From positions 372,001 to 436,000 of the forward strand of contig JAPDFW010000065.1 of NCBI GenBank assembly GCA_028826165.1: DNA of 64,000 nucleotides, written 5' to 3'. Below the pieces are notes generated by a model. It saw nothing but the letters and a program-made list of their open reading frames with translations, did not search any database and was not told the DNA's origin. This document shows, piece by piece, positions 1,649-37,972 of the stretch (position 1 is the first letter of the stretch; each line of letters opens with the position of its first letter). The DNA comes from Anaeramoeba ignava BMAN (taxonomy: Eukaryota > Protista > Anaeramoebae). A program made the position numbers and the translations under genes.

Positions 1649-3488
1649 TTAAATGAAATAAGTTTCAATTTCATCAACTGTCCATTCATTATTAGAACCA
1701 GCTAAATAACTTTGATCTGCATTTGAATTTGGTTCAATTCCTTTAGGATTAGTATATTTGTAACCACAACTTGTTACAAAAGGTGAAAAATCAGAATTTA
1801 ACCAAATTCCTCCACTTCTTCCAAAACATGGACCTCTATCTAAACTATAATAAATTGCAAATTGTTCTTGTCCTTGTTTGATTGGAAATTTCTCTGGTTT
1901 TCTATTTCCTTTATTATTTCTTAATGAAAAGAGGAATGCATTTGAATCCTGTATATCTCCCCGAACTTTCTTTCTATCTTCATTTCTCCATTTTGATTTA
2001 TCAGTTGTAAATCCAACTTGAGTAAATCCTCCAAAAATATAATTTTCTTTTGTTTTGATAATAATTAATGTTTTTCCTTTATTATCACAAATTGAATGCC
2101 ATTTATTACAATCAAATCCATCTTTTTTTGTTGAAAATCCTTTTTTCATTTTAGAAAAAAATTCATTATCATTTATCCATTCTTTTAATTTCTTAAGATA
2201 TTCAATATCTTTGATAATTTCTGAATCTGAAAAAATATTCAATAATTTCTTTTCATTTTGATTTGATTTCTTAATTGATAATTTAAGATTTTGTATTTCC
2301 TTATCTTTTTGTTTGAGAATATTATCTTTCTTCTCATTTTCTGATTTTAGATTTTGAATATCTTTTTGTTTTTTCACATTTTCTAATTTTAAATTTTGAT
2401 TTTCTTTTATTGAATTCTCAATTTCCTTTGCTTTTTTTTCATTTTCTAATTTTAGATTTTGAATATTTTTCTTTATTATCAATTTCCTCTTTTTGGATTT
2501 GATTTTCTGATTCAAATGATTTGATTTTTTTTATCTTCTTTTTAATTTTCTTTTCATTTTCTTTAATTTTTGTTTGATTTTCTTGATCTTGAATTTGAAA
2601 AATAGTTTTTTGAATATCAACTAAAAAAGATTTAGGAAGAAAAAAATCAAATTGTTTTAATTTATAAAAATCTTGTTTTGGAATTGAATCTTTATCAAAT
2701 AATGAAAAAAAAGAATGAAATAATCTTTTCTTTTCAATTTCTTTTTCTTTCTTTCCTTTTAATCTTTGATTTCTTTTTTCAATCCAATTATTTAAAAATT
2801 GAAAAAAATCAAATTGAAAAATTTCTTTTTTTTCTTGTTTAAATTGAATAAATTTGATAATTTCTTCTTTAGTTAAATTGAATAAATTCTCATTATTCTG
2901 AATTTGGGAAAAATTTTGATTTATTAATTCAAAACATTTTATTTCAATTTCATTTGAATTCAAATTTCGATTTTGGAATAAAAATAGGAAAAAATTTGAA
3001 TAATTAATTGAATTTAAAATTTTTTTTTGAATAAATTCTTTCAATAAATTTAATTTAAAATAAATTGAAATTTCCAATAATTGAATAAGATTTTCTTGAT
3101 TCTCAAAAGAAATATTTCCATAATAAATATAACTCAAAATTGATTCCATTTCTTTTTTATTAAATTGATTTAAAGAAATAGAAAGAGATTCTTGCCTTAA
3201 AAACTTATTAAAAAAAGGAGATCTTGAAGATAAAATTGATTTATGAACTTTAATTTCAAAAGGATTTGATTTATTCTCAACAAAAATTGAAAAATCTTTA
3301 AATGAATTTTCTTTTAAAAGGTTTGAATAATCTTCAATTAAATTTTTTGTTACTTTTTTTTCTAAATTTTTCATTTCATTTGCATTTTCATTTTGATTTG
3401 CATTTTCAATTTGATTTTCATTTTCATTTTGATTTTCAATTTGATTTTCATTTTCAATTTGGTTATTATTATTATTATTATTATCCAT
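1649..3488 (-). CDS. BTB-coiled coil-TLDc protein (BTB type A, TLDc type alpha); one frameshift near 2465
   Basis: ORF 2439-3488 has BTB (DFSIFV..VHKSILSSRSPFF); ORF 1649-2515 has TLDc (WHSICDNKGKTLIIIKT..IFGGFT..AFLFSL..GPCFG..VDEIETY); join in an A-run restored by comparison with paralogue 20311. Confidence 0.85.
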
Positions 3489-3658
3489 TTTGTTTTTTGT
3501 TTTTGTTTTTTGTTTTTTGTTTTTTTGTTGTTTATTAAAAAAAAAGGAAAAAAATGAATTTTTTAATTTTCCGAATTTTTATTTAATTTTTTTATTTTAA
3601 TTTAAATTTAAATCTTTTTTCCTTTTTAGATTTTTTTGTTTTTGCTTTTTTTTTTAAA

Positions 3659-5452
3659 TTAAATGAAATAAGTTTCAATTTCATCAACTGTCCAATCTGA
3701 ATAAGAACCAGCTAAATAACTTTTTGCTTCATTTGTATCATGTTTTAATCCATTTGGAAGTTTATATGTTGCTCCAAAATCTGTATGTCCTTTATGTAAA
3801 TCACTCGAAATAAGAATATCAGTACAATATTGATTTCTATGATCACCAAATCTTGGACCATTACTTGAAACGTAACGAATTGCATAATCTTCACGATTTT
3901 CTTGAATTTCAAATTTTTGAGGTAAATCATTTTTTGGATTTTTTAAACTGAAAATAAATGCATTTGAATCTTTAATATATCGATTTGAACCTGATTTAAA
4001 TCCAACTTGAGTAAATCCTCCAAAAATATAATTATCTGTTGTTTTGATAATAATTAATGTTTTTCCTTTATTATCACAAATTGAATGCCATTTATTTCCT
4101 GTAAATCCATCTTTTTTTGCTGAAAATCCTTTTTTCATTTTAGAAAAAAATTCATTATCATTTATCCATTCTTGTAATTTTAGAACATATTCAATTTCTT
4201 GAATTATTGAATCTGGAAACATATTCAATAATTTCTTTTCATTTTGATTTGATTTCTCAATTGATAATTTAAGATTTTGTATTTCTTCATCTTTTTGTTT
4301 GAGAATATTATCTTTCTTCTCATTTTCTGATTTTAGATTTTGAATATCTTTTTTTTGTTTCTCAATTTCTTGTTTTTGTTTTTGATTTTCAGATTTGAAA
4401 GATGAAATTTTTTTGTCTCTTCTTTGGATCTTCTTGTCTCTCCTTTGAATTTTCTTTTCTTGTTTCTTATTTGCCCGAATCATTTTTTTTGGGATTTTCT
4501 TTTCTTTATTATCAATTTCTTCTTTTTGGATTTGATTTTCTTTTTGATTATCTTGAATAACTTTGTTTTGAATATCAACTAAAAAAGAATTGGGAAGAAA
4601 AAAATCAAATTGTTTTAATTTATAAAAATCTTGTTTTGGAATTGAATCTTTATCAAATAATGAAAAAAAAGAATGAAATAATCTTTTCTTTTCTTTTTCT
4701 TTTTCTTTCTTTCCTTTTAATCTTTCATTTCTTTTTTCAATCCAATTATTTAAAAATTGAAAAAAATCAAATTGAAAAATTTCTTTTTTTTCTTGTTTAA
4801 ATTGAATAAATTTGATAATTTCTTCTTTAGTTAAATTGAATAAGTTCTCATTATTCTGAATTTGGGAAAAATTTTGATTTATTAATTCAAAACATTTTAT
4901 TTCAATTTCATTTGAATTTAAATTTCGATTTTGGAATAAAAATTGGAAAAAATTTGAATAATTAATTGAATTTAAAATTTTTTTTTGAATAAATTCTTTC
5001 AATAAATTTAATTTAAAATAAATTGAAATTTCTAATAATTGGATAAGATTTTCTTGATTCTCAAAAGAAATATTTCCATAATAAATATAACTCAAAATTG
5101 ATTCCATTTCTTTTTTATTAAATTGATTTAAAAAAATTTTATCAATCTCATTTCGTTCTTTTAAAAACTTATTAAAAAAAGGAGATCTCGAAGATAAAAT
5201 TGATTTATGAACTTTAATTTCAAAAGGATTTGATTTATTCTCAACAAAAATTGAAAAATCTTTAAATGAATTTTCTTTTAAAAGGTTTGAATAATCTTTA
5301 ATTAAATTTTTTGTTACTTTTTTTTCTAAATTTTTCATTTCATTTTCATTTTCATTTTGATTTGCATTTTCAATTTGATTTTCATTTTGATTTTCAATTT
5401 GATTTTGATTTTGATTTGCATTTTCAATTTGGTTATTATTATTATTATCCAT
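3659..5452 (-). CDS. BTB-coiled coil-TLDc protein (BTB A, TLDc beta), intact 597 aa
   Basis: Single ORF with BTB, K/E/Q-rich coiled coil and TLDc motifs. Confidence 0.92.
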   Translation of the reverse strand: MDNNNNNQIENANQNQNQIENQNENQIENANQNENENEMKNLEKKVTKNLIKDYSNLLKENSFKDFSIFVENKSNPFEIKVHKSILSSRSPFFNKFLKERNEIDKIFLNQFNKKEMESILSYIYYGNISFENQENLIQLLEISIYFKLNLLKEFIQKKILNSINYSNFFQFLFQNRNLNSNEIEIKCFELINQNFSQIQNNENLFNLTKEEIIKFIQFKQEKKEIFQFDFFQFLNNWIEKRNERLKGKKEKEKEKKRLFHSFFSLFDKDSIPKQDFYKLKQFDFFLPNSFLVDIQNKVIQDNQKENQIQKEEIDNKEKKIPKKMIRANKKQEKKIQRRDKKIQRRDKKISSFKSENQKQKQEIEKQKKDIQNLKSENEKKDNILKQKDEEIQNLKLSIEKSNQNEKKLLNMFPDSIIQEIEYVLKLQEWINDNEFFSKMKKGFSAKKDGFTGNKWHSICDNKGKTLIIIKTTDNYIFGGFTQVGFKSGSNRYIKDSNAFIFSLKNPKNDLPQKFEIQENREDYAIRYVSSNGPRFGDHRNQYCTDILISSDLHKGHTDFGATYKLPNGLKHDTNEAKSYLAGSYSDWTVDEIETYFI

Positions 5453-5557
5453 TTTGTTTTTTGTTTTTGTTTTTTGTGTTTTTGTTTTTTAAAAAAAAAG
5501 GAAAAAAAATGAAAAAAATGAAAAATTTTAAATTCATTTTTTTTTTGTTGTTTAAAA
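5453..5557. promoter_or_regulatory. 105-bp bidirectional promoter with TTCATTTT initiator-like motifs on each strand
   Basis: AAAATGAA at ~5505-5522 (minus gene) and TTCATTTT at ~5533 (plus gene). Confidence 0.55.
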
Positions 5558-7641
5558 ATGGAACAAGATTTAAAACAAAAATTTATTAATCATTCTCAAC
5601 AACATCTTTTTGATTTTTTTAATGAATTAAATGAAGAAGAAAAAAAAAATTTTATTTCTCAATTAAAACAAATTGATTTTGAAGAAATAGATCGGATTTT
5701 TGAAACTTTTTCAGAAAATACACAAAGTAAATTTAATCAGAAAAGTTTTTACATTTGGAAAAAAAAAAGAAATTAAAAAAAATATATAAAAAAAAAATGG
5801 TAAATTTGACTTGAAAAAAATTTTAATTGAAAATTTTTTTTTTGATTAAATTTTTATTAAAAGAAAATATTCAATCACTTCAAAATCTTTTGGAACCAAT
5901 TCCAAATATTGAGAAAGTTTCAACTATGAGTTTAAAAAGACAACAAGATTTATTTGATTTGGGTTTAAAAGCTATTCAAAAAGGTGAAGTTTGTTGTATT
6001 GCTCTTGCTGGTGGTCAAGTAAATCAACATTAAAATGAACTTAGAAATTAAAATTATAATTAAATTTGAATTTGAATTTGAAATTAAATTTAAAATTCAT
6101 TTTGAAATTAAAATTAAAATTAAAATTCATTTTGAAATTAAAATTAAAATTAAAATTCATTTTGAAATTAAAATTAAAATTAAAATTCATTTTGAAATTA
6201 AAATTAAAATCAAAAATTAAAATTGAAATTAAAATTAAAATTAAAATTCATTTTGAAATTAAAATTAAAAAATTGAAATTAAAATTAAAATTAAAATTAA
6301 AATTAAAATTAAAATTAAAATTAAAATTAAAATTAAAATTAAAATTAAAATTAAAATTGAAATTAAAATTCATTTTGAAATTAAAATTAAAATTGAAATT
6401 AAAATTAAAATTAAAATTCATTTATAAAATTCATTTTGAAATTAAAATTAAAATTCATTTATAAAATTCATTTATAAAATTCATTTATAAAATTCATTTA
6501 TAAAATTCATTTATAAAATTCATTTTGAAATTAAAAGGGAACAAGACTCGGATTTGATCACCCAAAAGGAACATTAAATATCGAAATGCCATCACAAAAA
6601 AGTTTATTTGAAATGCAAGCAGAACAACTTTTAAAACTACAATCAATGGCGAAAAAAGAAGAAGCAAAAACACCAACAATTCCATGGTACATTTTAACAA
6701 GCGATTCAACACACGAAGAAACAGTGAAATTTTTTGAAGAAAATTCCCATTTCGGAATTGGAAAGGAAAACATCACATTTTTCGAACAAGGAAAACTACC
6801 AGGATTTAATTCATTAGAAGAGAAAAAAATAATATTAACAAACAAAGGAGAAATATCATTTTCACCCAACGGAAATGGGGGTATTTATAAAGCAATCAAA
6901 GACTCAGGAGTTCTTGAAAAAATGTCAAGAAAAAACATCAAATATATTCATGTTTATTCGGTTGATAATTGCCTTATCAAAATGGCAGATCCTGTTTTCA
7001 CAGGTTATTGTATTGAGGAAAAAGCAGAATGTGGAGCAAAAGTGGTCGCCAAACTTCATGCAAATGAACGTGTTGGAGTTCTTTGCAACAAAGAAGAACA
7101 TGTTCATGTTATTGAATATTCAGAAATTGGCAAGGAAAAATCTGAAATGAAGGATAAAAATGGCGATTTACTATTTAATTCTGCAAATATTTGCAACCAT
7201 TTATTCACGTTTGATTTTCTTAAGAAAATTTGTCTTGATTACTACTCAAAAATGCCTTATCATAAGGTTCAACGAATGGTTAATGGATTGAAAGACGGAA
7301 TTATTCAGCCATTTATTGCAATTAAATTTGAACAGTTTATTTTTGATGTTTTTCCGTTTGCAAAAAGTTTTGCTGTTTTGCAAGTTGAAAGAGAAAATGA
7401 ATTTTCCCCAATTAAAAACAAAACTGGAAATGATTCAATCGAAACTGCAAAAATTGCCATCTCCTCTTTGAATACAAAATTGGTTCAACAAGCTGGTGGT
7501 TTTATCGACTCTTCAAATTCAAATTTATTCGAGATTTCTCCTCTTGTTTCTTATAATGGAGAAAATTTACAAAATTTTGTTAAAGGAAAAACGTTCAAAC
7601 TTCCTTTTTATTTAAATTTAGATGCAATTCAACAAAATTAA
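5558..7641 (+). CDS. UAP1: UDP-N-acetylglucosamine pyrophosphorylase; exons 5558-5726, 5864-6018, 6538-7641
   Basis: Spliced LAGGQ|GTRLG..PKG, SPNGNGG, SVDN, EYSE, KFEQFIFDVF, EFSPIKN; both introns GTAAAT..AAAG and phase-compatible. Confidence 0.95.
6035..6530. repeat. (TAAAAT)n / TTCATTTATAAAA microsatellite filling UAP1 intron 2
   Basis: Direct inspection. Confidence 0.9.
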
Positions 7642-7779: not shown

Positions 7780-9444
7780 ATGGATCCTATAATTCAAAAA
7801 CTCCAATCAAATGATTCAAATTTTATTAAATCAATTTTTATTCTTTCTCAAGTTAATCAAGAAAAAATCAACTTAATTTCACTTTCTTTAAAAAATAATC
7901 AAGTTCTAAAAGACTTGACAATACAAGAAATTAGCGTTAAATATTTCCATTTCATTTCAAAAGCTGTTGAAAAAAACAAATCAATAAAAAAACTCAATAT
8001 TTCACACAATAATTTTGGAGAAAAAGGCGCAAATGATATCAAAAAAATCATAGAAAATAACAAAGAAATTATTGAACTAAATATTGGATTCAATTCATTT
8101 GAAACAAAATCAATTGAAATTATTTGTGAAGGATTAAAACAAAATTCGACTTTGAAGAAAATCGATTTTTCTTACAATTCAATTGATGATGAAGGAATCA
8201 AATGCATTTCAGAAACGCTGAAAATCAACCAAAATTTAACATCAATAAATCTTAAAGGAAATTCAATGAAGGAAATGGGATTGAAATATTTATCTGAATG
8301 TTTGTGCTTGAATTCAACTCTGACTGAGTTGGATATTTCATATAATAAAACTGAAGGGAATTTTTTGGCAGATTTCCTCGATTCTCTTTCGCAGAATTCT
8401 GTTTTGCAAAGACTGAATATTGGATCAAATCAAATTCATCCAAAAGAAGGAAAAATAATTGGAGAAAAATTAATCAATATTAAATCACTTACTCATCTCG
8501 ATATCTCCAAAAATGAGATTGAAGACATTGCAATTGTTTCCATATCGGAATCTTTGCAAAAAACCCGCAATATAACACACTTGAATATTGCAAACACATC
8601 ATACACTCAAATGGGATTGGATCATCTTATTCAAATGCTGAAGAAAAATTTATTTATCCAAAATATTCAATTGACCCAAAGTGATCCATATGTGAAATAT
8701 AAGCTCTCAATAAATAAGCAATTCAACGACCCCTTTATTCAAGACATGGCAAGACTGTTTGAAAGAAGAGAACTCTGTGATATTGAGATCACAACCAAAA
8801 CAGGTTGCATCTCAGTTCACAAGAGTATTATGCTCTCCAGAATCGGAGAACATTGTCTCAAAAGATTGTCGCTAATATCCTATAAATACCCCAAAAATGA
8901 AGTTTACAATCTTCTTTTCTGGATATATACAGGCTTTGTTCCTGATGAGTCTTTAGTTCAATCTTTTTCTGACATTCTAAACGAGATTGAATATCAAGTT
9001 TCCAAATTTGAAAAAAAATCAAAAAAAAATGGATTAAAAAAAGATTTCAAAAAATTATATAAAAATTTCATCCCAAATGATTTTTCTATCGTTTTGGAAA
9101 CAGGAAAAGAGATCAAATGCCACAAATCGATTCTGATTGCAAGGAGCGACTTGTTTAGAGGAATGCTCATTAACGTAATTGATCCCTCAAATAAAGTTCA
9201 TGAATATCGGAATTCTTCTTTTTCTTCTATCAAATCTATTATTAAATATTTTTATTTGGATAAACTTAAACATGATATTTCTTTTCAGGCTCGAAAGGAA
9301 TTGGATGATGCTGCTGAATTCTATCAAATGTATTCAGATCTCAATTTTAATAAACTTTTGAAAAAATTTGATTTAAAAAATTTATCAAAAAAAAAGCAAA
9401 ATCGAAAAAATCTAAAAAGGAAAAAAGATTTAAAATTAAATTAA
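7780..9444 (+). CDS. Ribonuclease-inhibitor-type LRR protein with two C-terminal BTB domains
   Basis: 28-aa LxxLxLxxNxI repeats, then DIEI..VHKSIMLSR and DFSI..CHKSILIARSDLF BTB motifs. Confidence 0.88.
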   Translation: MDPIIQKLQSNDSNFIKSIFILSQVNQEKINLISLSLKNNQVLKDLTIQEISVKYFHFISKAVEKNKSIKKLNISHNNFGEKGANDIKKIIENNKEIIELNIGFNSFETKSIEIICEGLKQNSTLKKIDFSYNSIDDEGIKCISETLKINQNLTSINLKGNSMKEMGLKYLSECLCLNSTLTELDISYNKTEGNFLADFLDSLSQNSVLQRLNIGSNQIHPKEGKIIGEKLINIKSLTHLDISKNEIEDIAIVSISESLQKTRNITHLNIANTSYTQMGLDHLIQMLKKNLFIQNIQLTQSDPYVKYKLSINKQFNDPFIQDMARLFERRELCDIEITTKTGCISVHKSIMLSRIGEHCLKRLSLISYKYPKNEVYNLLFWIYTGFVPDESLVQSFSDILNEIEYQVSKFEKKSKKNGLKKDFKKLYKNFIPNDFSIVLETGKEIKCHKSILIARSDLFRGMLINVIDPSNKVHEYRNSSFSSIKSIIKYFYLDKLKHDISFQARKELDDAAEFYQMYSDLNFNKLLKKFDLKNLSKKKQNRKNLKRKKDLKLN

Positions 9445-9578
9445 ATATAAAAATTAAATAAAAATTCGGAAAATTAAAAAATTCATTTTTTTCCTTTTTT
9501 TTTAATAAACAAAAACACAAAACAAAAAACAAAAAACAAAAACACAAAACAAAAAACAAAACAAAAACACAAAACAAA

Positions 9579-11214
9579 ATGGATAATAATAATAATAACC
9601 AAATTGAAATTGAAAATGAAAACAAAATTGAAAATGAAAATGAAAATGATAAAATTTTTAATCAAAAATTACTTCAAGATTATCAAAAATTAATGCAAAA
9701 TAAAAATGAATCAGATTTTGTAATAAAAACAGGAAAAGATTCTTTTGAATTTTATTCTCATAAATTAATTTTAATTTCTCGTTCTCCTTATTTTTCTCTT
9801 CTTTTAAAAGAAAAAAATATAAATCAAATTTCATTTCCTCAATTTAAAAAAGAAAATATGGAACAAATTTTAAAATATATTTATTCAAGTCAAATTGAAA
9901 TTAAAAAAGAAAATTTAATTGATTTATTAATAATTTCAAATAAATTCCAATTAAATTTACTTTATAATTATATTGAAAATCAAATTATTAAAATTATTAA
10001 TGAAGAAAATGTTTTTAATATTTTATTATCAAATCGAAAAATTAAATCAATAAAATTAGAAAAAGAATGTTTTAATTTTATTAATAATAATCTTTCTAAA
10101 ATAAATCAAATAAAAATTAATCAAATATTAAATCAAAAACAAATTAAAATATTAATTAATCAAATAATTGAAAAACAAACAGAAATTGGAATTGAAATTT
10201 TTAATATTATTAATAATTTCCAAAATCAAATTCAAAATAAAAAAGAAAAAAAGAAAATTATTAAAGAATTTGAAAAAATAATTCTAAATAAAAACATCAA
10301 AAAAGAAGATTTAAACAAAATCCAAAAATTATCATTTCATTCAAAATTATTTCTTACTTTTATTCAAAACCAAGAAATTGATCAAAAAAACAAAGAAATT
10401 GATCAAAAAAAACAAAGAAAATCAAGAACAAAAACAAGAAAATGAAAAACAAAAGCAAGAAATTAATCAAAAAAATAAAGAAAATCAAGAACAAAAACAA
10501 GAAAATGAAAAACAAAAGCAAGAAATTAATCAAAAAAATCAAGAAATTAATCAAATCAAACTAATTTATGAAGAAATGAAATCAATTTACGAAGAAAATA
10601 AATCAATTTATGAAGAAATGAAATCAAAATATGAAGAAAAGTTACAAAAAGCATTTTCAGATTCAGAAATTATCAAAGAAATTGAAATGATGAAGAAATT
10701 AAAAGAATGGATAAATGATGAATTCTTTTATAAAATGAAAAAAGGATTTTCAACAAAAAAAGATGGATTTACAGGAAATCAATGGCATTCAATTTGTGAT
10801 AATAAAGGAAAAACATTAATTATTATCAAAACAACAGATAATTATATTTTTGGAGGATTTACTCAAGTTGGATTTATTTCAGGTTCAGATCGATATATTA
10901 AAGATTCAAATGCATTTATTTTCAGTTTAAAAAATCCAAAAAATAATTTACCTCAAAAATTTGAAATTCAAGAAAATCGTGAAGATTATGCAATTAATTA
11001 TGATTCAAGTTATGGTCCAAGATTTGGTGATTATCATGGTCAATATAATACTGATATTCTTATTCAGAGTGATTTACATAAAGGAAGAACAGATTTTGGA
11101 GCAACATATAAACTTCCAAATGGATTAAAACATAAAACAGATGAAGCAAAAAGTTATTTAGCTGGTTCTTATTCAGATTGGAAAGTTGATGAACTTGAAA
11201 CTTATTTTATTTAA
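9579..11214 (+). CDS. BTB-coiled coil-TLDc protein (BTB B, TLDc beta); +1 frameshift in an A-run near 10410
   Basis: ORFs 9579-10445 (BTB: SDFVI..SHKLILISRSPYF) and 10378-11214 (TLDc); 8 A versus 7 A in the adjacent repeat copy. Confidence 0.87.
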
Positions 11215-14400: not shown

Positions 14401-15737
14401 ATTAAAATTAAAATTAAAATTAAAATTATAATTAAAATCAAAATTAAAATCAAATTTAAAATTAAAATCAATATTTAAATTAAAATTAAAATTAAAATCG
14501 GATAAAAATTAAATTTAAAATTAATATTGAAATTAAAATCAAAATTAAAATCAAAATTAAAATTAAAATCAATATTTAAATTAAAATTAAAATTAAAATC
14601 GGATAAAAATTAAATTTAAAATTAAAATCAAAATCGGATAAAAATTAAAATTAATATTAAAATTAAAAGATGATGAATATCTTCCATTCCCAGTTTCATT
14701 CGAAAAATCAATCCAATTCAGAAAAGAAATTACTCAAAAATTAATCGAAAATACAAGATACTTAAGAAGTTTACAAGAACAAACATCAGTCTACACACAA
14801 CAAATCCAATTCAAAAATCAAGAAGACAAAAAAAATAAAATGGAAAATCAATACGAAAAAATAAACGGAAAATTTGATGAAACAAATAAAGAAAACGAAA
14901 AAACAAAAGAAAAAGGCTCCAAATCGAAAAAAAATAAACAAAACACAAACACGAAAAAAAAAGAAACAAACGATAACCGAAAAAAGGGGAAAACAAAAGC
15001 CAAAACAAAAAAAAAACCGAATGCAAAAAACAAAAAACCACCAAATTCAACAAAAAGAAAGAAAAATCAGACACAAACAAAGCCAAAAGGAGAAGAAAAC
15101 ATATCAATCACGAGGAGGAACATGGTCGATGGAAGAAACATATCAGCTTATCGAGGGGGTAAGAAGGTATGGAGTTGGAAGATGGTCTTTGGTTCGGGAT
15201 GATCCAAAAATTCGGATCGGATCTCATCGAACAAACCACGATTTATGTAATAAATGGCGAAACCTAACATCAAGAAGCCACGATGAAGATTTCAAGAAAT
15301 TTATCACAGAAGCAATCAACCAGAAGCATCCTGTTGTTTACCATGGAAATGACAGCGCTGAGATTACAGACGATGATATTGAAAAAAAATCCGATTTTTT
15401 GGATTCTTCTTTTGATAATCAAGATATTAAAAGAACAAAAAAATCCAATAAGAAAAATCCCCAAAATAAAATAGATCTTCCAAATGAGATTTTTGAGAGG
15501 CAAATTGAAGCTTTGGAACAACAACAAAATGAAAATTTGGTTGAGCAAAATTTTGTTATCAATCAAAATTCACGTCAATTTGAAAAGGATTTAATTCAAA
15601 AAAATCAAGATCAAAAGAATAATCAAAAATTAGCAGTTGATGTTGTATTTGAAAAAGAGAATGATTCACAATCAAATTTTGCAGAAAATTTTGAGAAGAA
15701 AGAAGAAGAAGAAGAAGAAAAAGAGAAAATGAATTAA
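11414..15737 (+). CDS. Telobox/TRF-like Myb-domain protein; exon 11414-11665 tentatively linked, last exon ~14670-15737 with one frameshift
   Basis: WSMEETYQLIEGVRRYGVGRW..RTNHDLCNKWRNL is a telobox Myb; donor GTAATA at 11666, acceptor AAAG at ~14669; middle exons (13900-14300) unresolved. Confidence 0.6.
11666..13648. repeat. Minisatellite B, ~143-bp unit, ~14 copies, starting at a 5' splice site
   Basis: Anchor GAATAAAAC at 11784, 11926, 12066, 12211, 12355, 12500, 12641, 12785, 12931, 13074, 13217, 13359, 13502. Confidence 0.92.
14292..14668. repeat. (TAAAAT/CAAAAT)n intronic microsatellite
   Basis: Direct inspection; ends at AAAG acceptor. Confidence 0.85.
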
Positions 15738-20310: not shown

Positions 20311-21992
20311 ATGGATAATGATAATAATAATAACCAAATTGAAAATGCAAATCAAATTCAAAATCAAAATGAAAATGAAATGAAAAATTTAGAAAAAAAA
20401 GTAACAAAAAATTTAATTAAAGATTATTCAAACCTTTTAATTGGAAATTCATTTAAAGATTTTTCAATTTTTGTTGAGAATGGATCAAATCCTTTTGAAA
20501 TTAAAGTTCATAAATCAATTTTATCTTCAAGATCTCCTTTTTTTGATAAGTTTTTAAGAGAACAAAATGAGATTGATAAAATTTTTTTAAATCAATTTAA
20601 TAAAAAAGAAATGGAATCAATTTTGAGTTATATTTATTATGGAAATATTCCTTTTGAGAATCAAGAAAATCTTATTCAATTATTGGAAATTTCAATTTAT
20701 TTTAAATTAAATTTATTGAAAGAAATTATTCAAAAAAAAATTTCAAATTCAATTAATTATTCAAATTTTTTCCAATTTTTATTCCAAAATCGAAATTTAA
20801 AATCAAATGAAATTGAAATAAAATGTTTTGAATTAATAAATCAAAATTTTTCCCAAATTCAGAATAATGAGAATTTATTCAATTTAACTAAAGAAGAAAT
20901 TATCAAATTTATTCAATTTAAACAAGAAAAAAAAGAAATTTTTCAATTTGATTTTTTTCAATTTTTAAATAATTGGATTGAAAAAAGAAATAAGAGATTA
21001 AAAGGAAAGAAAGAAAAAGAAATTGAAATTGAAAAGAAAAGATTATTTCATTCTTTTTTTTCATTATTTGATAAAGATTCAATTTCAAAACAAGATTTTG
21101 ATAAATTAAAAACAATTTGATATTTTTCTTCCAAATTCTTTTTTAATTGATATTCAAAAAACTATTTTTCAAATTCAAGATCAAGAAAATCAAACAAAAA
21201 TTAAAAGAAGAGATAAAAGAATCAAATCATTTCAATCTGAAAACCAAATCCAAAAAGAGGAAATTGATAATAAAGAAAAGAATATTCAAAATCTAAAATC
21301 AGAAAATGAGAAAAGAAAGATAATATTCTCAAACAAAAAGATGAAGAAATACAAAATCTTAAATTATCAATTGAGAAATCAAAACAAAATCAAAATAAAT
21401 TATTGAATATTTTTCAGATTCAATAATTATTCGAGATATTGAATATGTTAAGAAATTAAAAGAATGGATAAATGATGATGAATTTTTATAAAATGAAAAA
21501 AGGATTTTCAGTAAAAAAAGATGGATTTACAGGAAATAAATGGCATTCAATTTGTGATAATAAAGGAAAAACATTAGTTATTATCAAAACAAAAGAAAAT
21601 TATATTTTTGGAGGATTTACTCAAGTTGGATTTACAACTGATAAATCAAAATGGAAAGAAAAAGATATCAATAAAAGAAATGGGTTTATTCCAGATAAAA
21701 ATGCATTTCTCTTTTCATTAAGAAATGATAAAGGAGATAGAAAACCAGAGAAATTTCCAATTAAAAAGGAGAAGAACAAACAGCAATTTATTATGATTTA
21801 GATAGTGGTCCATGTTTTGGAAGAAGTGGAGGAATTTGGTTAAATTATGATTTTTCACCTTTTGTAACAAGTTGTGGTGAATTTTATACTAATCCTAAAG
21901 GAATTGAACCAAATTCAAATGAAGCTAAAAGTTATTTAGCTGGTTCTTATGATGAATGGAAAGTTGATGAAATTGAAACTTATTTCATTTAA
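20311..21992 (+). CDS. BTB-coiled coil-TLDc protein (BTB A, TLDc alpha); several frameshifts (error or pseudogene)
   Basis: Near-identical inverted paralogue of 1649-3488; indels near 21110, 21310, 21410, 21765; ends ETYFI-TAA at 21992. Confidence 0.75.
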
Positions 21993-22890: not shown

Positions 22891-24354
22891 ATGGAAAATT
22901 ATTTAAATTTAGAAAAACTTTCAAATGATTTAAAAAATTTATTTCAAAATCAAAATCAAAATCAAAAAGAAGAAGAAAGTTATTTTGATTTTGAAATATT
23001 TTGTGAAGAAAATAAAATTTCATTTAAAACTCATAAATCAATTCTTTCTTCAAGAAGTCAATATTTTAAATCACTTTTCAATTCTAAAATGAAAGAATTT
23101 CAAGAAAATAAATTAATTCTAAAAGATTTTTCAAGTTCAATTCTATTTCCAATTTTGAATTATTTTTATTCAGGAAAAATTGAAATTAATTCAGAAAATG
23201 CAATAGAAATTTTAATGTTTTCTTCAAAATATTTAATTGATGAATTAATTGAAATTTGTTCAAACTTTATTAAAAATAATTTACAAATTGAAACTGTTAT
23301 TGATATTCTTAAATTATCTGAAAGAATGAACTTAAATCAATTATTTGATTTTTCTTATCAATTTATTTTTGATAATTTTTATAAATTTATCAAAACTCCA
23401 TTTTTTCTTGAACTTGAAGAAAATCATTTAAATTCAATTTTATTAAATGATAAAATCCGAATAAATGAATTTGAACTTTTCCAAACAATAATAAAATGGG
23501 GAAAACATAAATCAAATATTAATCAAGAAAAAGAACTAGAAAAACAAGAAAAAGAAAAATTACAAGATCAAATTTCAAATATTATTCAAAAAATCAGATT
23601 TATTGATTTTTCAGATCAACAAATTGAAGATATATTAAAAGAAGAATTAATTCCAAATCAAATTTCACAACAATTAAATAAATTACTAATAATTAAAAAT
23701 CAAGAAAATGAAGAAAAGTTAAAACAATTTATTGAAAATCAAAATTCATTAATTTTCAAAACAAGAATTGAATTAAATTCTTCAACAATAATTCAAGATA
23801 TAAAACAATTAAAGCAATTAAAAGAATGGATAAATGATAATGAATTCTTTTATAAAATGAAAAAAGGATTTTCAGCAAAAAAAGATGGATTTGATTGTAA
23901 AAAATGGCATGATAAAGTTGATAATAAGGGAAAAACATTAATTATTATCAAAACAAAAGATAATTATATTTTTGGAGGATTTACTCAAGTTGGATTTACA
24001 AATGATAAATCAAAATGGAATGAAGATTATGAAGATGAAGATGGATGGATTAAAGATAAAAATGCATTTCTCTTTTCATTAAGAAATGATAAAGGAGATA
24101 GAAACCCAGAGAAATTTCCAATCAAAAAAGGACAAGAACAAACAGCAATTTATTATGATTTATATAGAGGTCCATGTTTTGGAGCAAATGGAGGAATTTG
24201 GTTAGATTCTAATTTTTCACCTATCGTAACAAGTTGTGGTGAATTTTATACTAATCCTAAAGGAATTGAACCAAATTCAGATGAAGATCAAAGTTATTTA
24301 GCTGGTTCTTATGATGAATGGATTGTTGATGAAATTGAAACTTATTTCATTTAA
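22891..24354 (+). CDS. BTB-BACK-TLDc protein (BTB C, TLDc alpha), intact 487 aa
   Basis: DFEIF..THKSILSSRSQYFKSLF; BACK (FLELEE..NEFELFQTIIKWG..IRF); TLDc. Confidence 0.92.
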   Translation: MENYLNLEKLSNDLKNLFQNQNQNQKEEESYFDFEIFCEENKISFKTHKSILSSRSQYFKSLFNSKMKEFQENKLILKDFSSSILFPILNYFYSGKIEINSENAIEILMFSSKYLIDELIEICSNFIKNNLQIETVIDILKLSERMNLNQLFDFSYQFIFDNFYKFIKTPFFLELEENHLNSILLNDKIRINEFELFQTIIKWGKHKSNINQEKELEKQEKEKLQDQISNIIQKIRFIDFSDQQIEDILKEELIPNQISQQLNKLLIIKNQENEEKLKQFIENQNSLIFKTRIELNSSTIIQDIKQLKQLKEWINDNEFFYKMKKGFSAKKDGFDCKKWHDKVDNKGKTLIIIKTKDNYIFGGFTQVGFTNDKSKWNEDYEDEDGWIKDKNAFLFSLRNDKGDRNPEKFPIKKGQEQTAIYYDLYRGPCFGANGGIWLDSNFSPIVTSCGEFYTNPKGIEPNSDEDQSYLAGSYDEWIVDEIETYFI

Positions 24355-24866
24355 AAATTATTTTTCATTTTTTCTTTCAAAATTCAATTCAATTTTAATT
24401 TACTTTCAAATCAAATTAAATTATTCAAATTAATAAATAAAAAACAAATCCAATTTTAAAAATTAAATTTAAATTAAAAAATATTATTAAAAATATGATT
24501 AAATATGAAAAAATTGTTTTTTGAAGATAATAAACCAAAATAAAAATTGAAAATAGAAATTAATAATAATTAAATTTAAATTATTTATTATTAAATAAAT
24601 TAATAAAGAATTCAATTATAATTTATTATTAAAAATTCATTAAATCAAGAAATATTTAAAACAAAACAATTTTCCAATTTAAAAATTTATTTTCAATATA
24701 TTTTATTATAATTAAAATTGGAATAATAAATAATCAAAAATATTATTTCAATAAAATAAAATTAATTTTAATTTTAATTATTTAATATTCTTTATTTCAT
24801 TTTTGAAATGAACGCAAATTAAAAATTCAAATTGATTAAGAAAAAAAAGAAAGAAAAAAAAGAAAA

Positions 24867-25444: not shown

Positions 25445-27096
25445 TTAAATAAAATAAGTTTCAAGTTCATCAACTGTCCAAGATGAATAAGAACCAGCTA
25501 AATAACTTTTTGCTTCACTTGTATTATGTTTTAATCCATTTGGAAGTTTATATGTTGCTCCAAAATCTGTTTGTCCAGATTGTAAATCACTAAAAATACG
25601 AATATCAGTATTATATTGACCTCTATTATCACCAAATCTTGGACCTTCACTTGAATCATAAAGAATTGCATAATCTTCACGATTTTCTTGAATTTCAAAT
25701 TTTTGAGGTAAATCATTTTTTGGATTTTTTAAACTGAAAATAAATGCATTTGAATCTTTAATATAATCTCCATCTGAACCTGAAATAAATCCAACTTGAG
25801 TAAAACCTCCAAAAATATAATTATCTGTTGTTTTGATAATAATTAATGTTTTTCCTTTATTATCACAAATTGAATGCCATTTATTTCCTGTAAATCCATC
25901 TTTTTTTGTTGAAAATCCTTTTTTCATTTTATAAAAGAATTCATCATCATTTATCCATTCTTTTAATCTCTTCATCATTTCAATTTCTTTGATAATTTCT
26001 GAATCTGAAAATGTTTTTTGTAACTTTTTAATCTCTTCATAAATTGGTTTCATTTCTTCATAAATTGGTTTCATTTGATTAATTTCTTGTTTTTGTTCTT
26101 CAATTTCTTTGTTTTTTTGATCAATTTCTTGTTTTTGTTCTTGAACTTCTTGTTTTTGTTTTTGAATTTCTTGTTTTTGTTTTTCATTTTCTTTGTTTTT
26201 TTGTTCAATTTCTTGATTTTTTTGATTAATTTCTTGTTTTTGTTTTTGTTTTTCAATTTTCTTGTTTTTGTTTTCAATTTTCTTGATTTTTGATTAATTT
26301 CTTGGTTTTGAATAAAAGTAAGAAATAATTTTGAATGAAATGATAATTTTTGGATTTTGTTTAAATCTTCTTTTTTGATGTTTTTATTTAGAATTATTTT
26401 TTCAAATTCTTTAATAATTTTCTTTTTTTCTTTTTTATTTTGAATTTGATTTTGGAAATTATTAATAATATTAAAAATTTCAATTCCAATTTCTTTTTGT
26501 TTTTCAATTATTTGATTAATTAATATTTGAATTTGTTTTTGATTTAATATTTGATTAATTTTTGTTTGATTTATTTTAGAAAGATTATTATTAATAAAAT
26601 TAAAACATTCTTTTTCTAATTTTATTGATTTAATTTTTCGATTTGATAATAAAATATTGAAAACATTTTCTTCATTAATAATTTTAATAATTTGATTTTC
26701 AATATAATTATAAAGTAAATTTAATTGGAATTTATTTGAAATTATTAATAAATCAATTAAATTTTCTTTTTTAATTTCAATTTGACTTGAATAAATATAT
26801 TTTAAAATTTGTTCCATATTTTCTTTTTTAAATTGAGGAAATTCAATTTGATTTATATTTTTTTCTTTTAAAAGAAGAGAAAAATAAGGAGAACGAGAAA
26901 TTAAAATTAATTTATGAGAATAAAATTCGAAAGAATCTTTTCCTGTTTTTATTATAAAATCTGATTCATTTTTATTTTGCATTAATTTTTGATAATCTTG
27001 AAATAATTTTTGATTAAAAATTTTATCATTTTCATTTTCAATTTGATTTTCATTTTCATTATCATTTTCAATTTCATTTTCAATTTCATTTTCCAT
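25445..27096 (-). CDS. BTB-coiled coil-TLDc protein (BTB B, TLDc beta); frameshift(s) in coiled-coil repeats
   Basis: ORFs 26071-27096 and 25445-26074; inverted paralogue of 9579-11214. Confidence 0.85.
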
Positions 27097-28222: not shown

Positions 28223-28319
28223 TAAAAAACAAACTAAAAAAAAATTTAATTAAAAAAACAACAAAGAAAAAAAATGAAATTTTCTTTTTTTAAAAATTTT
28301 CAATTTAATTATTTTGCTT

Positions 28320-29797
28320 TTATTTATAATTTATTTTAAAATTAAATTTGAAAAAATAAGAAATACTTGATTAGAATTGATATTTTATTAATTAAAAATT
28401 TATATTTTGTTGAATAAAATATTTTATTAATTTTATATTAAAATTTAAATAAATATTTATTAATAATTTATTTATAATTTATTTTAAATTAATTTGAAAA
28501 AAAGAAATACTTAATTAGAATTTATAATTTATTAATTAAAAATTTATATTTTGTTGAATAAAATATTTTATTAATTTTATATTAAAATTTAAGTAAATAT
28601 TTATTAATAATTTATTTATAATTTATTTTAAATTAATTTGAAAAAGAAATATTTGATTAGAATTGATAATTTTATTAATTAAAAATTTATATTTTGTTAA
28701 ATAAAATATTTTATTAATTTTATATTAAAATTTAAATAAATATTTATTAATAATTTATTTATAATTTATTTCAAATTAAATTTGAAAAAGAAATACTTGA
28801 TTAGAATTTATAATTTATTAATTAAAAATTTATATTTTATTAAATAAAATATTTTATTAATTTTATATTAAAATTTAAATAAATATTTATTAATATTTTA
28901 TTTATAATTTATTTTAAATTAAATTTGAAAAAGAAATACTTGATTAGAATTGATAATTTATTAATTAAAAATTGATATTTTGTTGAATAAAATATTTTAT
29001 TAATTTTATATTAAAATTTAAATAAATATTTATTAATAATTTATTAATAATTTATTTTAAAATAATTTGAAAAAGAAATATTTGATTATAATTGATATTT
29101 TATTAATTAAAAATTTATATTTTGTTGAATAAAATATTTTATTAGTTTTATATTAAAAATTTAAATAAATATTTATTAATAATTTATTTATAATTTATTT
29201 TAAATTAATTTGAAAATAAAAATATTTGATTAAAATTGATAATTTATTAATTAAAAATTTATATTTTATTAATAAAAAAATTTATTTAATTATTTTTTAA
29301 TTTATTTATAATTTATTTTAAATTAATTTGAAAAATAAAAATATTTGATTAAAATTTATAATTTATTAATTAAAAATTTATATTTTGTTAAATAAAATAT
29401 TTAATTAGTTTTATATTAAAATTTAAATAAATATTTATTAATAATTTATTTATAATTTATTTTTAATTGAAAAAAAAATTTACTTGATTTTATTGAATTA
29501 ATTAAAATTGATATTTTATTTAAATAAAAAATATTTTTAGTTTTTATATTAAAATTTAAATAAATATTTACTAATAATTTATTTATAATTTATTTTAAAA
29601 TAACTTGAAAAAAGAAATATTTGATTAGAATTGATAATTTATTAATTAAAAATTTATATTTTGTTAAATAAAATATTTAATTAGTTTTATATTAAAATTT
29701 AAGTAAATATTTATTAATAATTTATTTATAATTTATTTTAAAATTAATTTGAAAATAAGAAATACTTGATTATAATTGATAATTTATTAATTAAAAA
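28320..29797. repeat. Minisatellite D, ~143-bp unit, ~10 copies
   Basis: Anchor AAATA(C/T)TTGATT at 28361, 28505, 28647, 28791, 28934, 29076, 29220, ~29339, ~29478, 29615, 29760. Confidence 0.9.
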
Positions 29798-29824
29798 TGA
29801 AAAAAATTAACAAAAAAAATATTC

Positions 29825-31305
29825 TTAAATGAAACCACATTCAATTTCATCAACAACCCAGTTATTATAAGAACCAGCTAAATATCTTTTAGCTTCATTT
29901 GTTTTTGGTTCAATCCCATTAGGCAAATTATAAGTATAACCAAAATTAGAGTCACCAGGTTGTAAAATCAAATTTAAAGAAAAATCAGAATAATAACGAC
30001 CACCAAAAATTGGACCAAAACTTGAATAATCATAATAAATAGCAAAATTCTCTTTTCCTTTTTTAATTGGAAATTTCTCAGGTTTTCTATCATTATTATC
30101 ATTTCTTAATGAAAAAATAAATGCATTTGAATCTGGAATTGAACCTTCAGCATAATTTCTATCAATATCTCTCCATTTGGATTTATCAGTTGTAAATCCA
30201 ATTTGAGTAAAACCTCCAAAAATAAAATTATCTTTTGTTTTGATAATAATTAATGTTTTTCCCTTATTATCAACTTTATCATGCCATTTTTGAGAAGAAA
30301 ATCCATCTCTTTTTGCTGAAAATCCTAATTTCATTTTGGAAAAGAATTCATTATCATTTATCCATTCTTTTTAATTTTTGAAATTGTTTTCTTTCTTGAA
30401 TTATTGTTGATCTGAATCGTGATTGGAAAATTAATGTATTTTCTTTTTGAAGGAATTCTTCTATTTCTTTTTGATCATTTTCATTTTGAAGGTTTTGGAA
30501 TTGAACTAATTTTTGTGAAATTTGATTTGGAATTAAATCTTCTTTCAAAATATCTTCAATTTGTTGATCTGAAAAATCAATAAATCTGATTTTTTGAATA
30601 ATATTTGAAATTTGATCTTGTAATTTTTCTTTTTCTTGTTTTTCTAATTTTTTTGTTTGATTAATATTTGATTTATGTTTTCCCCATTTTATTATTGATT
30701 GGAAAATTTCAAATTCATTTGTTTGAATTTCATTATTTGATAAAATTGAATTTAAATGATTTTGTTCAAGTTCAAGAAAAAAAGGAGTTTTGATAAATTC
30801 ATCAAAATTATCAAAAATAAATTGATAAGAAAAATCAATTAATTGCTTAAAATTTATTGTTTCAGATAATTTAAGAAGATCAACAATAGTTTCAAATTCT
30901 AAATTATTTTTAATAAAGTTTAAACAAGTTTCAATTAATTCATCAATTAAATATTTTGAAGAAAACATTAAAATTTCAACTGCATTTTCTAAATTAATTT
31001 CAATTTTTCCTGAATAAAAATAATTCAAAATTGGAAATAGAATTGAACTTGAAAAATCTTTTAGAATTAATTTATTTTCTTGAAATTCTTTCATTTTTAG
31101 AATTGAAAAGTGATTTAAAATAATGACTTCTTGAAGAAAGAATTGATTTATGAGTTTTAAATGAAATTTTATTTTCTTCACAAATTATTTCAAAATCAAA
31201 ATAACTTTCTTCTTCTTTTTGATTTTGATTTTGATTTTGATTTTGATTTTGAAATAAATTTTTTAAATCATTTGAAAGTTTTTCTAAATTTAAATAATTT
31301 TCCAT
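29825..31305 (-). CDS. BTB-BACK-TLDc protein (BTB C, TLDc gamma); +1 frameshifts near 31095 and 30370
   Basis: Three overlapping ORFs colinear with paralogue 22891; extra A in two A-runs. Confidence 0.85.
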
Positions 31306-34140: not shown

Positions 34141-34141
34141 C

Positions 34142-35806
34142 TTAAACAAAATATACTTCAAATATTTTGACTTCCCATCTTTTTAATGATCCTGCTAAAT
34201 AAGATTTTGAATCATTTGAGTTTGGTTTAATTTCATCACCAATTCCATAAGTATAACCAATATTTGTTACACCAGATTTTAGACTTGAATTAAAAACCAA
34301 ATCAGGAGTTATTTTTCCATTTCCACCAAAATAAGGACCTTTTTGAGCATTATAAAAAAGTGCATATTTTTCTTTCCCTGGAAGAATTGGAAATTGTTTA
34401 GGTTCTTTATCAGGGTTTTTAAGACTGAATAAAAAAGCTTTTGGATCTTCAATAAATTCATTGTTTTTATTGGATTGAAATCCAACGGTTGTATATGCTC
34501 CAAAAATATAATCGTCAGTGGTTCTAACTAAAATTAATGTTCTTCCTTTATCATTTACTTTCCCATAAAAATTTTCACTTGAAGAACTATCAAACTCCTT
34601 TAATGAAAATCCAAGGTTCATTGTAAACAAAAACTCATTATCATCAACCCATTTTTGAAGTTGTTGGTCTTCTTCTTCATTTTCAATAATTTCGGAAAGT
34701 AAAAACATTCTTGTTGATTTATAAGTTAAAATTTGAGCATCTTTAGCAAGGTCTTTTAATTTTTTAATTTCTCTCATACTTAATTGGATTTTTCCTTCTT
34801 TATTTTCAATTTCTTTTTTTTGATTATCTATTTCTATATCTTTGGCTTGAATCTCTTCGTTTTTGCTTTCAATTTTCTTGTTTTTTATTTCGTTATCATC
34901 TTTCTGTTTTTTTAAATTTTCATTTAATTTCCAAATTTGAAATTGTGTTATTTTCGACATGATTTTGTAGATAATTTCATCAGGAAGTTTTATAAATTTT
35001 TCTAAGTCTTTTTTGATTTCAAAATTTGATTTGAGATCTTTCACAGATGATTCTGGAAAATGAAATATTTCATTCAATAGTTTTTCGAAATCCTTTTCAT
35101 CATTTAGTTTTTCAAGTGGATTTCTTTCAATTTGATGTTGAGTCCAATTGAATAAAATTTGGATAATTTGAATGAAATATTGATTTTCTTCAATTATTTT
35201 TTTACTTAAATCTGTAATTTGTTGTTTTGATAATTCTAAAATATCTGGATTTTTTAGTATTTCTGCTGTTTTTTGATTCTGTTCATCAAAAACATTATTA
35301 TCGTCATCATCATCATCATAAATTCTTCTTTTGAATTTTGAATAAATAAAATTAATGCAAGAATCTTTGAGTTTTGAAGAACTAAATTTTTCACTTTCTT
35401 GGAGTATTTTGAAAGCATTTGTTTCATCAATAAATTCATCTAATTTTTTGACTATTCTTATTTTCAATGAATGAAGTTGGAAAATAGTTGAATATTTATA
35501 AATATCAAGAATATTTGAAGAATTAAATTCAATTTCATCAGTGTAAATAAAATTTAAAATTTGCTTCATAGTTTCTGAACTAATTTGAATTTTGATTTCG
35601 TTAATGTTTTTTTCTTTTAAATATTGATAGAAATAAACAGATCTTCCACTTAAAATTGATTTATGCGCTTTAAAATATCCATCTTTTGTGTGAATTGTAA
35701 AATCTGAAAAAATTTCTTTTTCAAAAATATTTCTTAAATTTTGTGTATAAATTTTTTTTTCTTCTTTTTCTTCTTTTTCTAATGTAATTTGATCGTTTTT
35801 ATCCAT
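34142..35806 (-). CDS. BTB-coiled coil-TLDc protein (BTB D, TLDc delta), intact 554 aa
   Basis: FSDFTI..FKAHKSILSGRSVYF; DKGRTLILVRT..IFGAYT..AFLFSL..GPYFG..FEVY. Confidence 0.92.
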   Translation of the reverse strand: MDKNDQITLEKEEKEEKKIYTQNLRNIFEKEIFSDFTIHTKDGYFKAHKSILSGRSVYFYQYLKEKNINEIKIQISSETMKQILNFIYTDEIEFNSSNILDIYKYSTIFQLHSLKIRIVKKLDEFIDETNAFKILQESEKFSSSKLKDSCINFIYSKFKRRIYDDDDDDNNVFDEQNQKTAEILKNPDILELSKQQITDLSKKIIEENQYFIQIIQILFNWTQHQIERNPLEKLNDEKDFEKLLNEIFHFPESSVKDLKSNFEIKKDLEKFIKLPDEIIYKIMSKITQFQIWKLNENLKKQKDDNEIKNKKIESKNEEIQAKDIEIDNQKKEIENKEGKIQLSMREIKKLKDLAKDAQILTYKSTRMFLLSEIIENEEEDQQLQKWVDDNEFLFTMNLGFSLKEFDSSSSENFYGKVNDKGRTLILVRTTDDYIFGAYTTVGFQSNKNNEFIEDPKAFLFSLKNPDKEPKQFPILPGKEKYALFYNAQKGPYFGGNGKITPDLVFNSSLKSGVTNIGYTYGIGDEIKPNSNDSKSYLAGSLKRWEVKIFEVYFV

Positions 35807-35967
35807 CTATTTTAATTAATAACAAATAAAAATTAATAAAATTAAAAAAAAAGGAAAAATATAAATAATAAAAATAAATAAACCTTATTAAAGAAAAAAT
35901 AAAAAGAAAAAAAATGAAAAAAATATTTTTCCTTTTTTTAATTAATTTTAAAAAAAAAAAAGAAGAA

Positions 35968-36328: not shown

Positions 36329-36330
36329 CC

Positions 36331-37972
36331 TTAAACAAAATATGTCTCAAATATTTTGACTTCCCATCTATTTGATGATCCAGCTAAATAAGTCCTTGAA
36401 TCATTTGAATAGAGTTTAATTTCATCACCAATTCCATAAGTATAACCAATATTTGTTACACCAGATTTTAGATTTGAATTAAAAATCAAATCAACAGGCG
36501 CTCTTCCATTTCCACCAAAACAAGGACCTTTTTTAGCATTAGAATAAAGTGCATATTGATCTTTCCCTGGAAGAATTGAAAATTGTTTAGGTTCTTTATC
36601 AGGGTTTTTAAGACTGAATAAAAAAGCTTTTGGATCTTTAGTAAATTCATTGTTTTTATTGGATTGAAATCCAACGGTTGTATATGCTCCAAAAATATAA
36701 TTTTCAGTGGTTTTAACTAAAATTAATGTTCTTCCTTTATCATTTACTTTCTCGTAAAATTCTTTATTTGAAGAATCCAAATCCTTTAATGACAATCCAA
36801 GTTTCATTTTAGTCAAAAACTCATTATCATCAACCCATTTTTGAAGTTGTTGATCTTCTTCTTCATTTTCAATAATTTCGGAACGTAAAAACATTCTTGT
36901 TGATTTCAAATTTGAGTTTTGTGCATTTTTGGCAATTTCTTGTCTTAAATTTTCTATTTCTTTCATACTTAATTGGATTTTTCCTTCTCTGTTTTCAATT
37001 TCTTTTTTTTGCTTTTCTATTTCCATTTCCTTTTTCTTAATTTCTTCTTTCTGGTTCTTGATTTTGTTCACTTTTTTTTCGTTATCATCTTTCTCTTTGT
37101 CTAAATCGTCATTTAATTTCCGAATTTCAAATTGATTTATTTTCGACATGATTTTGTAGATAATTTCATCTGGAAATTTTATAAATTTTTCTAAGCCTTT
37201 TTTGGCTTCAAATTTTGATTTGATATCTTTCACAGATGATTCTGACAAATTTTTAATCATTTCATCCATTAGATTTTCGAAATCCTTTTCATATTTGAGT
37301 TTTTCAAGTGGATTTTTTTCAATTTGATGTTGAGTCCAATTGAATAAAATTTGGATAATTTGAATGAAATATTGATTTTCTTCAATTAGTTTTTTACTTA
37401 AATCTGTAATTTGTTGTTTTGATAATTCTAAAATATCTGGATTATTTAGTATTTCTGCTGTTTTTTGCTTCTGTTCATCATCACCATCAACATCTTGGCT
37501 CTTTTTCAATTCTGAATAAATAAAATTAATGCAAGAATCTTTGAGTTTTGAAGAACTAAAATTTTCACTTTCTTGAAATATTTTGAAAACATTTGTTTCA
37601 TCAATAAATTCATCTAATTTTTTGACTATTTCTGTTAATAATGAATGAAGTTGGAAAATAGTTGAATATTTATAAATATCAAGAATATTTGAAGAATTAA
37701 ATTCAATTTCATCAGTGTAAATAAAATTTAAAATTTGCTTCATAGTTTCTGAATTAATTTGAATTTTGATTTCGTTAATGTTTTTTTCTTTTAAAGTATT
37801 GATAGAAATAAACAGATCTTCCACTTAAAATTGATTTATGCGCTTTAAAATCCTCATCTTTTGTGTGAATTGTAAAATCTGAAAAAATTTCTTTTTCAAA
37901 AATATTTCTTAAATTTTTTGTATGAATTTGTCTGCTTGCTTTTTCTAATGCAATTTGATCGTTTTTATCCAT
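36331..37972 (-). CDS. BTB-coiled coil-TLDc protein (BTB D, TLDc delta), tandem duplicate; +1 frameshift near 37795
   Basis: ORFs 37775-37972 and 36331-37824 colinear with 34142-35806; upstream flanks near-identical. Confidence 0.87.

Follow-up and report, generated by a model that had tools for sequence, protein, structure and literature searches.

A 64 000-nt stretch of the Anaeramoeba ignava genome (positions 372001–436000 of contig C66 in our labelling; hereafter the window) carries nine genes, named g1–g9 by position, that join an N-terminal BTB half to a C-terminal TLDc domain. Our data show that members of this family, often neighbours, exchange their tails by ectopic gene conversion or unequal crossover. 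These events begin or resolve in the first, conserved half of TLDc; they carry tails, along with the 3′ flanks, from one N-terminal type to another and also overwrite the sequence block in which they occur. Within a type the N-terminal half hardly varies, and concerted evolution keeps it young; the distal part of TLDc is older, is variable at single fixed positions and in loops, and evolves under strong positive selection. We read the genes as a recognition repertoire like the MATH-BTB and F-box adaptors of nematodes, with gene conversion as a secondary mixer, and give this reading a probability of about 0.6.

RESULTS

All nine genes lie where a preliminary description of the window had placed them, with the composition that it gave in terms of four N-terminal types (A–D) and four TLDc types (alpha–delta): two A-alpha, one A-beta, two B-beta, one C-alpha, one C-gamma and two D-delta (Table 1). 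The same description had singled out a shared block of ∼180 bp as the zone where partners switch. This block is 84–99% identical among types A–C and 65–69% identical to D. In sliding-identity comparisons the closest partner changes in the first half of TLDc, and informative-site tests put the switch points at 4184/4038 in g2, 2078/2049 in g1, 21564/21593 in g4 and 23961/23966 in g5 (permutation P ≤ 0.0002 for each); at the last of these g5 passes from g7-like to g1/g4-like sequence. All four switches thus fall inside the block or at its edge, as had been proposed. The D genes take no part because their block is too divergent, as homology-dependent exchange predicts.

Separate trees of the BTB and TLDc halves, a comparison suggested in the preliminary description, conflict with each other. 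In the BTB tree of 54 genes g2 sits within the A clade (support 100/100) and g5 among the C genes, whereas in the tail tree g2 groups with g3 and g6 and with a B-like cluster located on contig C13 (99/98), and g1, g4 and g5 form a single clade (100/100). Approximately unbiased tests on the BTB tree reject the groups g2+g3+g6 (P = 4e–4) and g1+g4+g5 (P = 2e–81) as well as a third one from outside the window, L005+L016+L018 (P = 1e–5), so congruence of the two trees is rejected. Both halves of the B-beta genes have their next relatives in the C13 cluster, which makes B-beta the old pairing and, therefore, g2 the chimera. The alpha tails give opposite signals: their 3′ flank, 85–89% identical to that of about 20 A genes, is A-family-like, but one motif in the tail and, with weak support, the position in the tree are C-like. 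The block itself is converted between types. In its own tree g1, g2, g3, g4 and g6 make up one starred clade, and within it the B genes g3 and g6 are 94–97% identical to local A genes and only 79% to their C13 relatives.

Flanking sequence takes part in these exchanges as well. The idea that the 3′ flank follows the TLDc type holds for alpha (435–860 bp at 84–93% identity), is reduced for beta to ∼30 bp common to g2 and g3, and fails for delta, where nothing is shared. Gene g1 carries a B-type 5′ flank, and in the spacer between g2 and g1 a copy of the sequence upstream of g3 is joined to the start of the beta 3′ flank at an A-rich microhomology. This spacer looks like a junction left by head-to-tail duplication of a B-beta unit, which was overwritten later. 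A gene with leucine-rich repeats and a BTB domain (7780–9444, plus strand) lies directly upstream of g3, and a copy of the final ∼65 bases of its coding sequence is present in the same spacer. The four-by-four scheme describes the combinations present in the window, but its types sample one locality of a continuum that is much larger, and D never exchanges.

On the genome scale the family is large. The Pfam TLD profile yields 556 candidates in the 42.8-Mb genome (147 contigs), and all 150 that were scored lie above the cut-off; our genome-wide DNA analyses rest on 60 loci (L001–L060), coordinate tables and public proteins. Named protein relatives are all from A. ignava, and N-termini like those of the window, at least 40 of type A (94–96% nucleotide identity) and at least 40 of type C (88–91%), are scattered over many contigs. 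This is the large lineage-specific expansion by which adaptively evolving adaptors are recognized. Identity drops from the N- to the C-terminal part, from 91% to 74% in type A (60 proteins chosen by whole-length score) and from 79% to 53% in type C. Silent diversity among 17 A genes is 0.034 for the N-terminus against 0.178 for the distal tail, and the pairwise homoplasy index test detects recombination (P = 0.002–0.003): the A front halves are homogenized, or were recently spread over older tails. A single clade of A tails is rejected (P = 1e–5). Since 12 of 178 tails (about 7%) have their nearest neighbour in another N-terminal type, and the tail tree requires 19 changes of N-terminal type versus 54 with shuffled labels, tail exchange is recurrent but occasional. 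The preliminary view of a repertoire diversified by recombination is therefore borne out as to recombination between paralogues, but the repertoire is not freely combinatorial.

Several further observations concern the family at large. Loci L045 (contig C45) and L059 (contig C129) have nearly identical TLDc halves on non-sister N-termini, an exchange between contigs. An A. ignava open reading frame (ORF) at G000:C104:866780-868927 has four tandem TLDc domains, and the unrelated metagenome proteins P0240, P0241 and P0244 carry 6–8 TLDc-like repeats. Most of the proteins P0002–P0239 are named 'PEP-CTERM sorting domain-containing protein' at NCBI, a misnomer that hides the family in databases.

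The diversity of the tails has a distinctive form: an invariant scaffold in which single positions vary among up to ten residues. Under site models M1a and M2a, in our own implementation, 7.6% of the distal tail codons have a ratio of non-synonymous to synonymous rates (omega) of 5.5, with twice the log-likelihood difference equal to 86 and nine sites of posterior >0.95, while 63% of codons have an omega of 0.08. Counts that need no model agree in direction. The tails of g2, g3 and g6 differ at 15–18 amino acids with 0–2 silent-only codons in 112, and half of the changes involve two or more bases; between g3 and g6 alone 15 residues differ and not one codon change is silent-only. In the tails of g1 and g5, 28 amino-acid differences stand against 2 silent ones. 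For the N-termini of g3 and g6 the corresponding numbers are 6 and 2 in 239. The C13 cluster varies independently at the same positions (Fisher exact test, P = 2e–4), and among 36 paralogues, less than a tenth of the family, we found no donors of micro-conversion for the main variable sites of the beta tails. A diversity-generating retroelement, which would copy changes confined to adenines from an invariant template, was considered and rejected: variable codons change at all three positions, including Trp, Met, Glu, Gln and Lys codons. Selection on the tail is the main source of diversity and tail swapping a secondary one; swapping adds little new specificity, because a tail lands on another nearly constant scaffold.

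A different kind of variation is found in sister genes outside the window. Five A-type loci (L040:3034-3780, L058:2889-3768, L042, L047 and L054) have a phase-1 intron in the variable loop of TLDc that consists of tandem, near-identical intron copies of ∼176 nt with three variable bases between them. A genome-wide search for this junction pattern gave 306 exact matches with a 3-nt piece, 13 with a 4-nt piece and none with 5–30 nt, and each control gave 1 match; arrays at G000 C21:67781-71266 and C35:358412-361314 are examples. The donor site of the arrays is found in 39 TLDc genes. The first 100 junction rows, inspected by eye, contain 23 different triplets, 89 of which rows have T in the middle, the wobble base in phase 1. 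NCBI gene models skip the whole array in the four of four cases checked. None of the nine window genes has such an array. The A-type locus L056 (3145–3327) has a single copy of the same intron with no micro-exon, probably the ground state of the arrays.

The TLDc model (mean predicted local distance difference test score, pLDDT, 92) matches NCOA7, OXR2, mEAK7 and Oxr1 at a template modelling (TM) score of ∼0.7. Four selected sites fall on short strands, at model residues 88, 130, 143 and 152, and alternate with conserved hydrophobic residues; the longest variable loop is the counterpart of the glycine-rich bend of NCOA7. At the other end, Pfam finds BTB in all types and BACK in type C, and the model of type A has a BTB-BACK fold that matches KLHL11 and KBTBD2 (TM 0.6–0.7). 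The canonical Cul3 motif is phi-x-E in the alpha3-beta4 loop (PMC3616122), and 76 of 79 C-type proteins have it. At least eight matches to the cullin neddylation domain, not typed as Cul3, were found in the genome. BTB, BACK, the motif and genomic cullins together make a role as adaptor of a Cullin3-RING ligase well founded for type C at the level of sequence; types A, B and D, which lack the motif, are not counted among the Cul3 adaptors. The proposed role of E3 substrate receptor is thus plausible, with the canonical motif behind it in C and not in A, B or D, and a swap between A and C could change the fate of a bound ligand. The A-type alpha3-beta4 loop comes in two length alleles, one in g1 and the other in g2 and g4, just where Cul3 would bind; neither has the canonical motif.

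Table 1. BTB-TLDc genes of the window and their exchange-related features (window coordinates)
Feature	Position	Strand	Description
g1	1649..3488	-	A-type BTB-BACK, coiled coil, alpha TLDc; one frameshift between 2442 and 2530; B-type 5′ flank
g2-g1 spacer	3489..3658	.	93% copy of g3 5′ flank (9379-9553) plus first ∼30 bp of beta 3′ flank
g2	3659..5452	-	intact 597-aa chimera, A-type BTB-BACK with beta TLDc from B lineage
shared block in g2	3998..4177	-	first half of TLDc
block copies	g1 2009-2188, g3 10696-10875, g4 21454-21633, g5 23818-23997, g6 25787-25966, g7 30194-30373		
g3	9579..11214	+	B-beta; one frameshift within 10315-10442; block overwritten by A-like block
g4	20311..21992	+	A-alpha; at least three frameshifts
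g5	22891..24354	+	intact 487-aa, C-type BTB-BACK with alpha TLDc; canonical Cul3 motif
alpha 3′ flank of g5	24355..24790	+	93% identical to flanks of g1 (1214-1648, minus) and g4 (21993-22453)
g6	25445..27096	-	B-beta; one frameshift within 26074-26293; N-terminus 99% identical to g3
g7	29825..31305	-	C-gamma; two frameshifts (31075-31184, 30357-30370)
g8	34142..35806	-	intact D-delta; block 65-69% to A-C
g9	36331..37972	-	D-delta tandem copy, 89% to g8; one frameshift within 37778-37824

Only g2, g5 and g8 are uninterrupted ORFs; the other six have from one to three or more frameshifts in homopolymer (A-run) or repeat tracts. The assembly was made from Nanopore reads with Pilon (PMC11550330), and these frameshifts may be long-read errors or signs of gene decay. 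Other genes of the window encode a UDPGP-family pyrophosphorylase (5550–7641), a Myb protein (14874–15737), a WD40 protein (15883–16473), ENY2 (18461–18856), a folliculin-like protein (52379–54637) and ELP1 (54869–59167). Intergenic minisatellites with a 143–146-bp period lie at 162–1141, 11601–13653, 19081–19878 and 28319–29798, downstream of several genes including g1 and g7. A segment of ∼100 codons is duplicated (38710–39343 and 42595–43267) beside a 12-bp repeat, in a region of long 6-bp repeats and strong strand skew (39600–45800). An ORF of 1446 aa (47919–52259, plus strand) has LamG-like and Fn3-associated repeats and a C-terminal hydrophobic segment, and is probably a surface protein.

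DISCUSSION

The pattern described above fits a birth-and-death family of BTB-BACK-TLDc adaptors in A. ignava. The variable surface of TLDc would be the ligand-binding site. Type C would dock on a Cullin3-type ligase and ubiquitylate the bound ligand; types A, B and D may ubiquitylate in a non-canonical way or via heterodimers, or may act as binders only. The ligands might be fast-changing foreign proteins, those of bacterial symbionts, prey, parasites or viruses, which is the least certain step. Shuffling would be an evolutionary process of the germline. A bolder form of the same idea, in which TLDc acts in an antibody-like manner within a germline-encoded intracellular repertoire, diversified by positive selection at fixed positions of its surface, by tail swapping between BTB types and by the micro-exon arrays in the variable loop of ∼40 sister genes, and marks symbiont, prey or viral proteins for ubiquitylation, deserves mention, although we would sooner bet against it.

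It should be noted that several points weigh against the recognition-repertoire reading. The phi-x-E motif was found in none of 58 A-type proteins and in none of types B and D, and their alpha3-beta4 loop is 3–5 residues shorter. That the selected sites form one exposed face is suggested by the strand alternation in a predicted model. Recombination inflates site models, and the N-terminus is M2a-positive too (omega of 4.2), partly at indel-rich, badly aligned loops. A-type loci were picked in part by N-terminal similarity, which lowers their N-terminal diversity; the 60 proteins selected on whole-length score have the same gap between the two ends. Finally, with six of nine genes frameshifted, some of them may be pseudogenes.

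Could the proteins instead regulate or ubiquitylate V-ATPase on phagosomes or symbiosomes, with the block as V-ATPase contact and the variable face reading a second ligand? The TLDc fold matches V-ATPase-bound Oxr1, NCOA7, mEAK7 and Rtc5, and a glycine equivalent to NCOA7 G815, which is needed for V-ATPase binding (PMC8608904), is at least 90% conserved and lies inside the block. Sequence identity to these proteins is, however, just 9–18%, G815 is also a structural bend glycine, and the position equivalent to S817 varies. Known TLDc–V-ATPase interfaces are conserved (PMC8804929), whereas the surface seen here is hypervariable and fits them poorly, and a single conserved target needs no hundreds of hypervariable copies. 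As far as predicted structure and sequence go, we regard this explanation as unlikely.

A neutral origin seems less likely still. A repeat-rich genome might duplicate and convert genes whose copies then decay, with variation due to relaxed constraint or mutational hotspots; the frameshifts in six genes and a dN/dS of about 0.75 for the A-type N-terminus point that way. Against it, most tail codons are strongly constrained beside fixed positions of very high omega, and silent change is nearly absent next to codon changes of several bases.

We also considered a dedicated combinatorial system, with the block as a programmed recombination site and BTB–TLDc pairs made freely, perhaps somatically. 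All four mapped switches do fall in or beside one 180-bp block, and cross-type pairs recur elsewhere in the genome. Yet the block is the most conserved stretch and the sole one alike enough between types, switch points vary and are patchy within it, D (67%) never swaps, tails track the N-terminal type strongly, and conversion also reaches 5′ flanks and BTB loops. The window ORFs examined include no recombinase gene, and the window showed no signal sequence (the genome was not searched for such an enzyme). With differing, patchy breakpoints and no dedicated enzyme among those ORFs, we reject programmed site-specific shuffling, of the V(D)J, VSG or shufflon kind, as quite improbable. Most improbable of all is that a long-read assembly with residual indel errors (PMC11550330) misjoined the A-beta and C-alpha genes at the shared block. 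The junctions do lie in near-identical sequence, but no two genes have an exact match of more than 199 bp, far below long-read length, and judging by sequence no chimeric half copies an existing donor (87–96%): the g2 tail is 91–92% identical to g3 and g6, the alpha tails are 87–88% identical among themselves, and no copy is more than 96% identical to the g2 N-terminus.

The recognition-repertoire reading has its closest precedent in the MATH-BTB and F-box adaptors of nematodes and plants, for which PMC4334554, summarizing Thomas 2006, reports selection in the substrate-binding and not the cullin-binding domain, and a proposed role as detectors of foreign proteins. The A. ignava genes share with them hundreds of copies, birth and death, a conserved, putatively cullin-binding end and a positively selected, putatively substrate-binding end. 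They differ in that TLDc is the variable domain and an anaerobic protist the host; moreover, divergent BTB types swap tails, and the canonical Cul3 motif is missing from type A, a large group. The same domain architecture is known from insects (Bmmp and CG7102, described as developmental regulators; bioRxiv 10.1101/2021.07.26.453796) and from BTB-TLDc clusters of Mucoromycota, and we found no report of hypervariability or module exchange in either. With the V-ATPase-binding TLDc proteins (Oxr1, NCOA7, mEAK7, Rtc5 and TBC1D24) the family has in common the fold (TM about 0.7) and the conserved bend glycine, but those proteins exist in few copies with a conserved interface, against hundreds in A. 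ignava with hypervariable sites and low identity.

Plant nucleotide-binding leucine-rich repeat receptors and the genes of the major histocompatibility complex are multigene families diversified by ectopic gene conversion. They resemble the genes studied here in mosaic paralogues and in homology-dependent exchange combined with diversifying selection on a binding surface (a putative one in our case), although the domains are different. In the literature we found neither a paper on Anaeramoeba BTB-TLDc genes nor one on hypervariable TLDc families. Insects and fungi already show the architecture, and the MATH-BTB and F-box families the evolutionary pattern; a family of hundreds in which TLDc is the hypervariable module under positive selection seems to be undescribed.

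Module swapping by itself is ordinary evolution of a multigene family. What gives these genes their interest is that TLDc, known as a conserved binder of V-ATPase, here behaves as a hypervariable, putatively ligand-binding module in hundreds of BTB adaptors, and does so in a protist with bacterial symbionts. Should the tails prove to bind foreign proteins, the idea of ubiquitin adaptors as innate immune receptors would reach the metamonads from worms and plants. The genes would then be testable candidates for the means by which the host controls the Anaeramoeba symbiosome, and TLDc would offer a small natural scaffold with defined variable positions.

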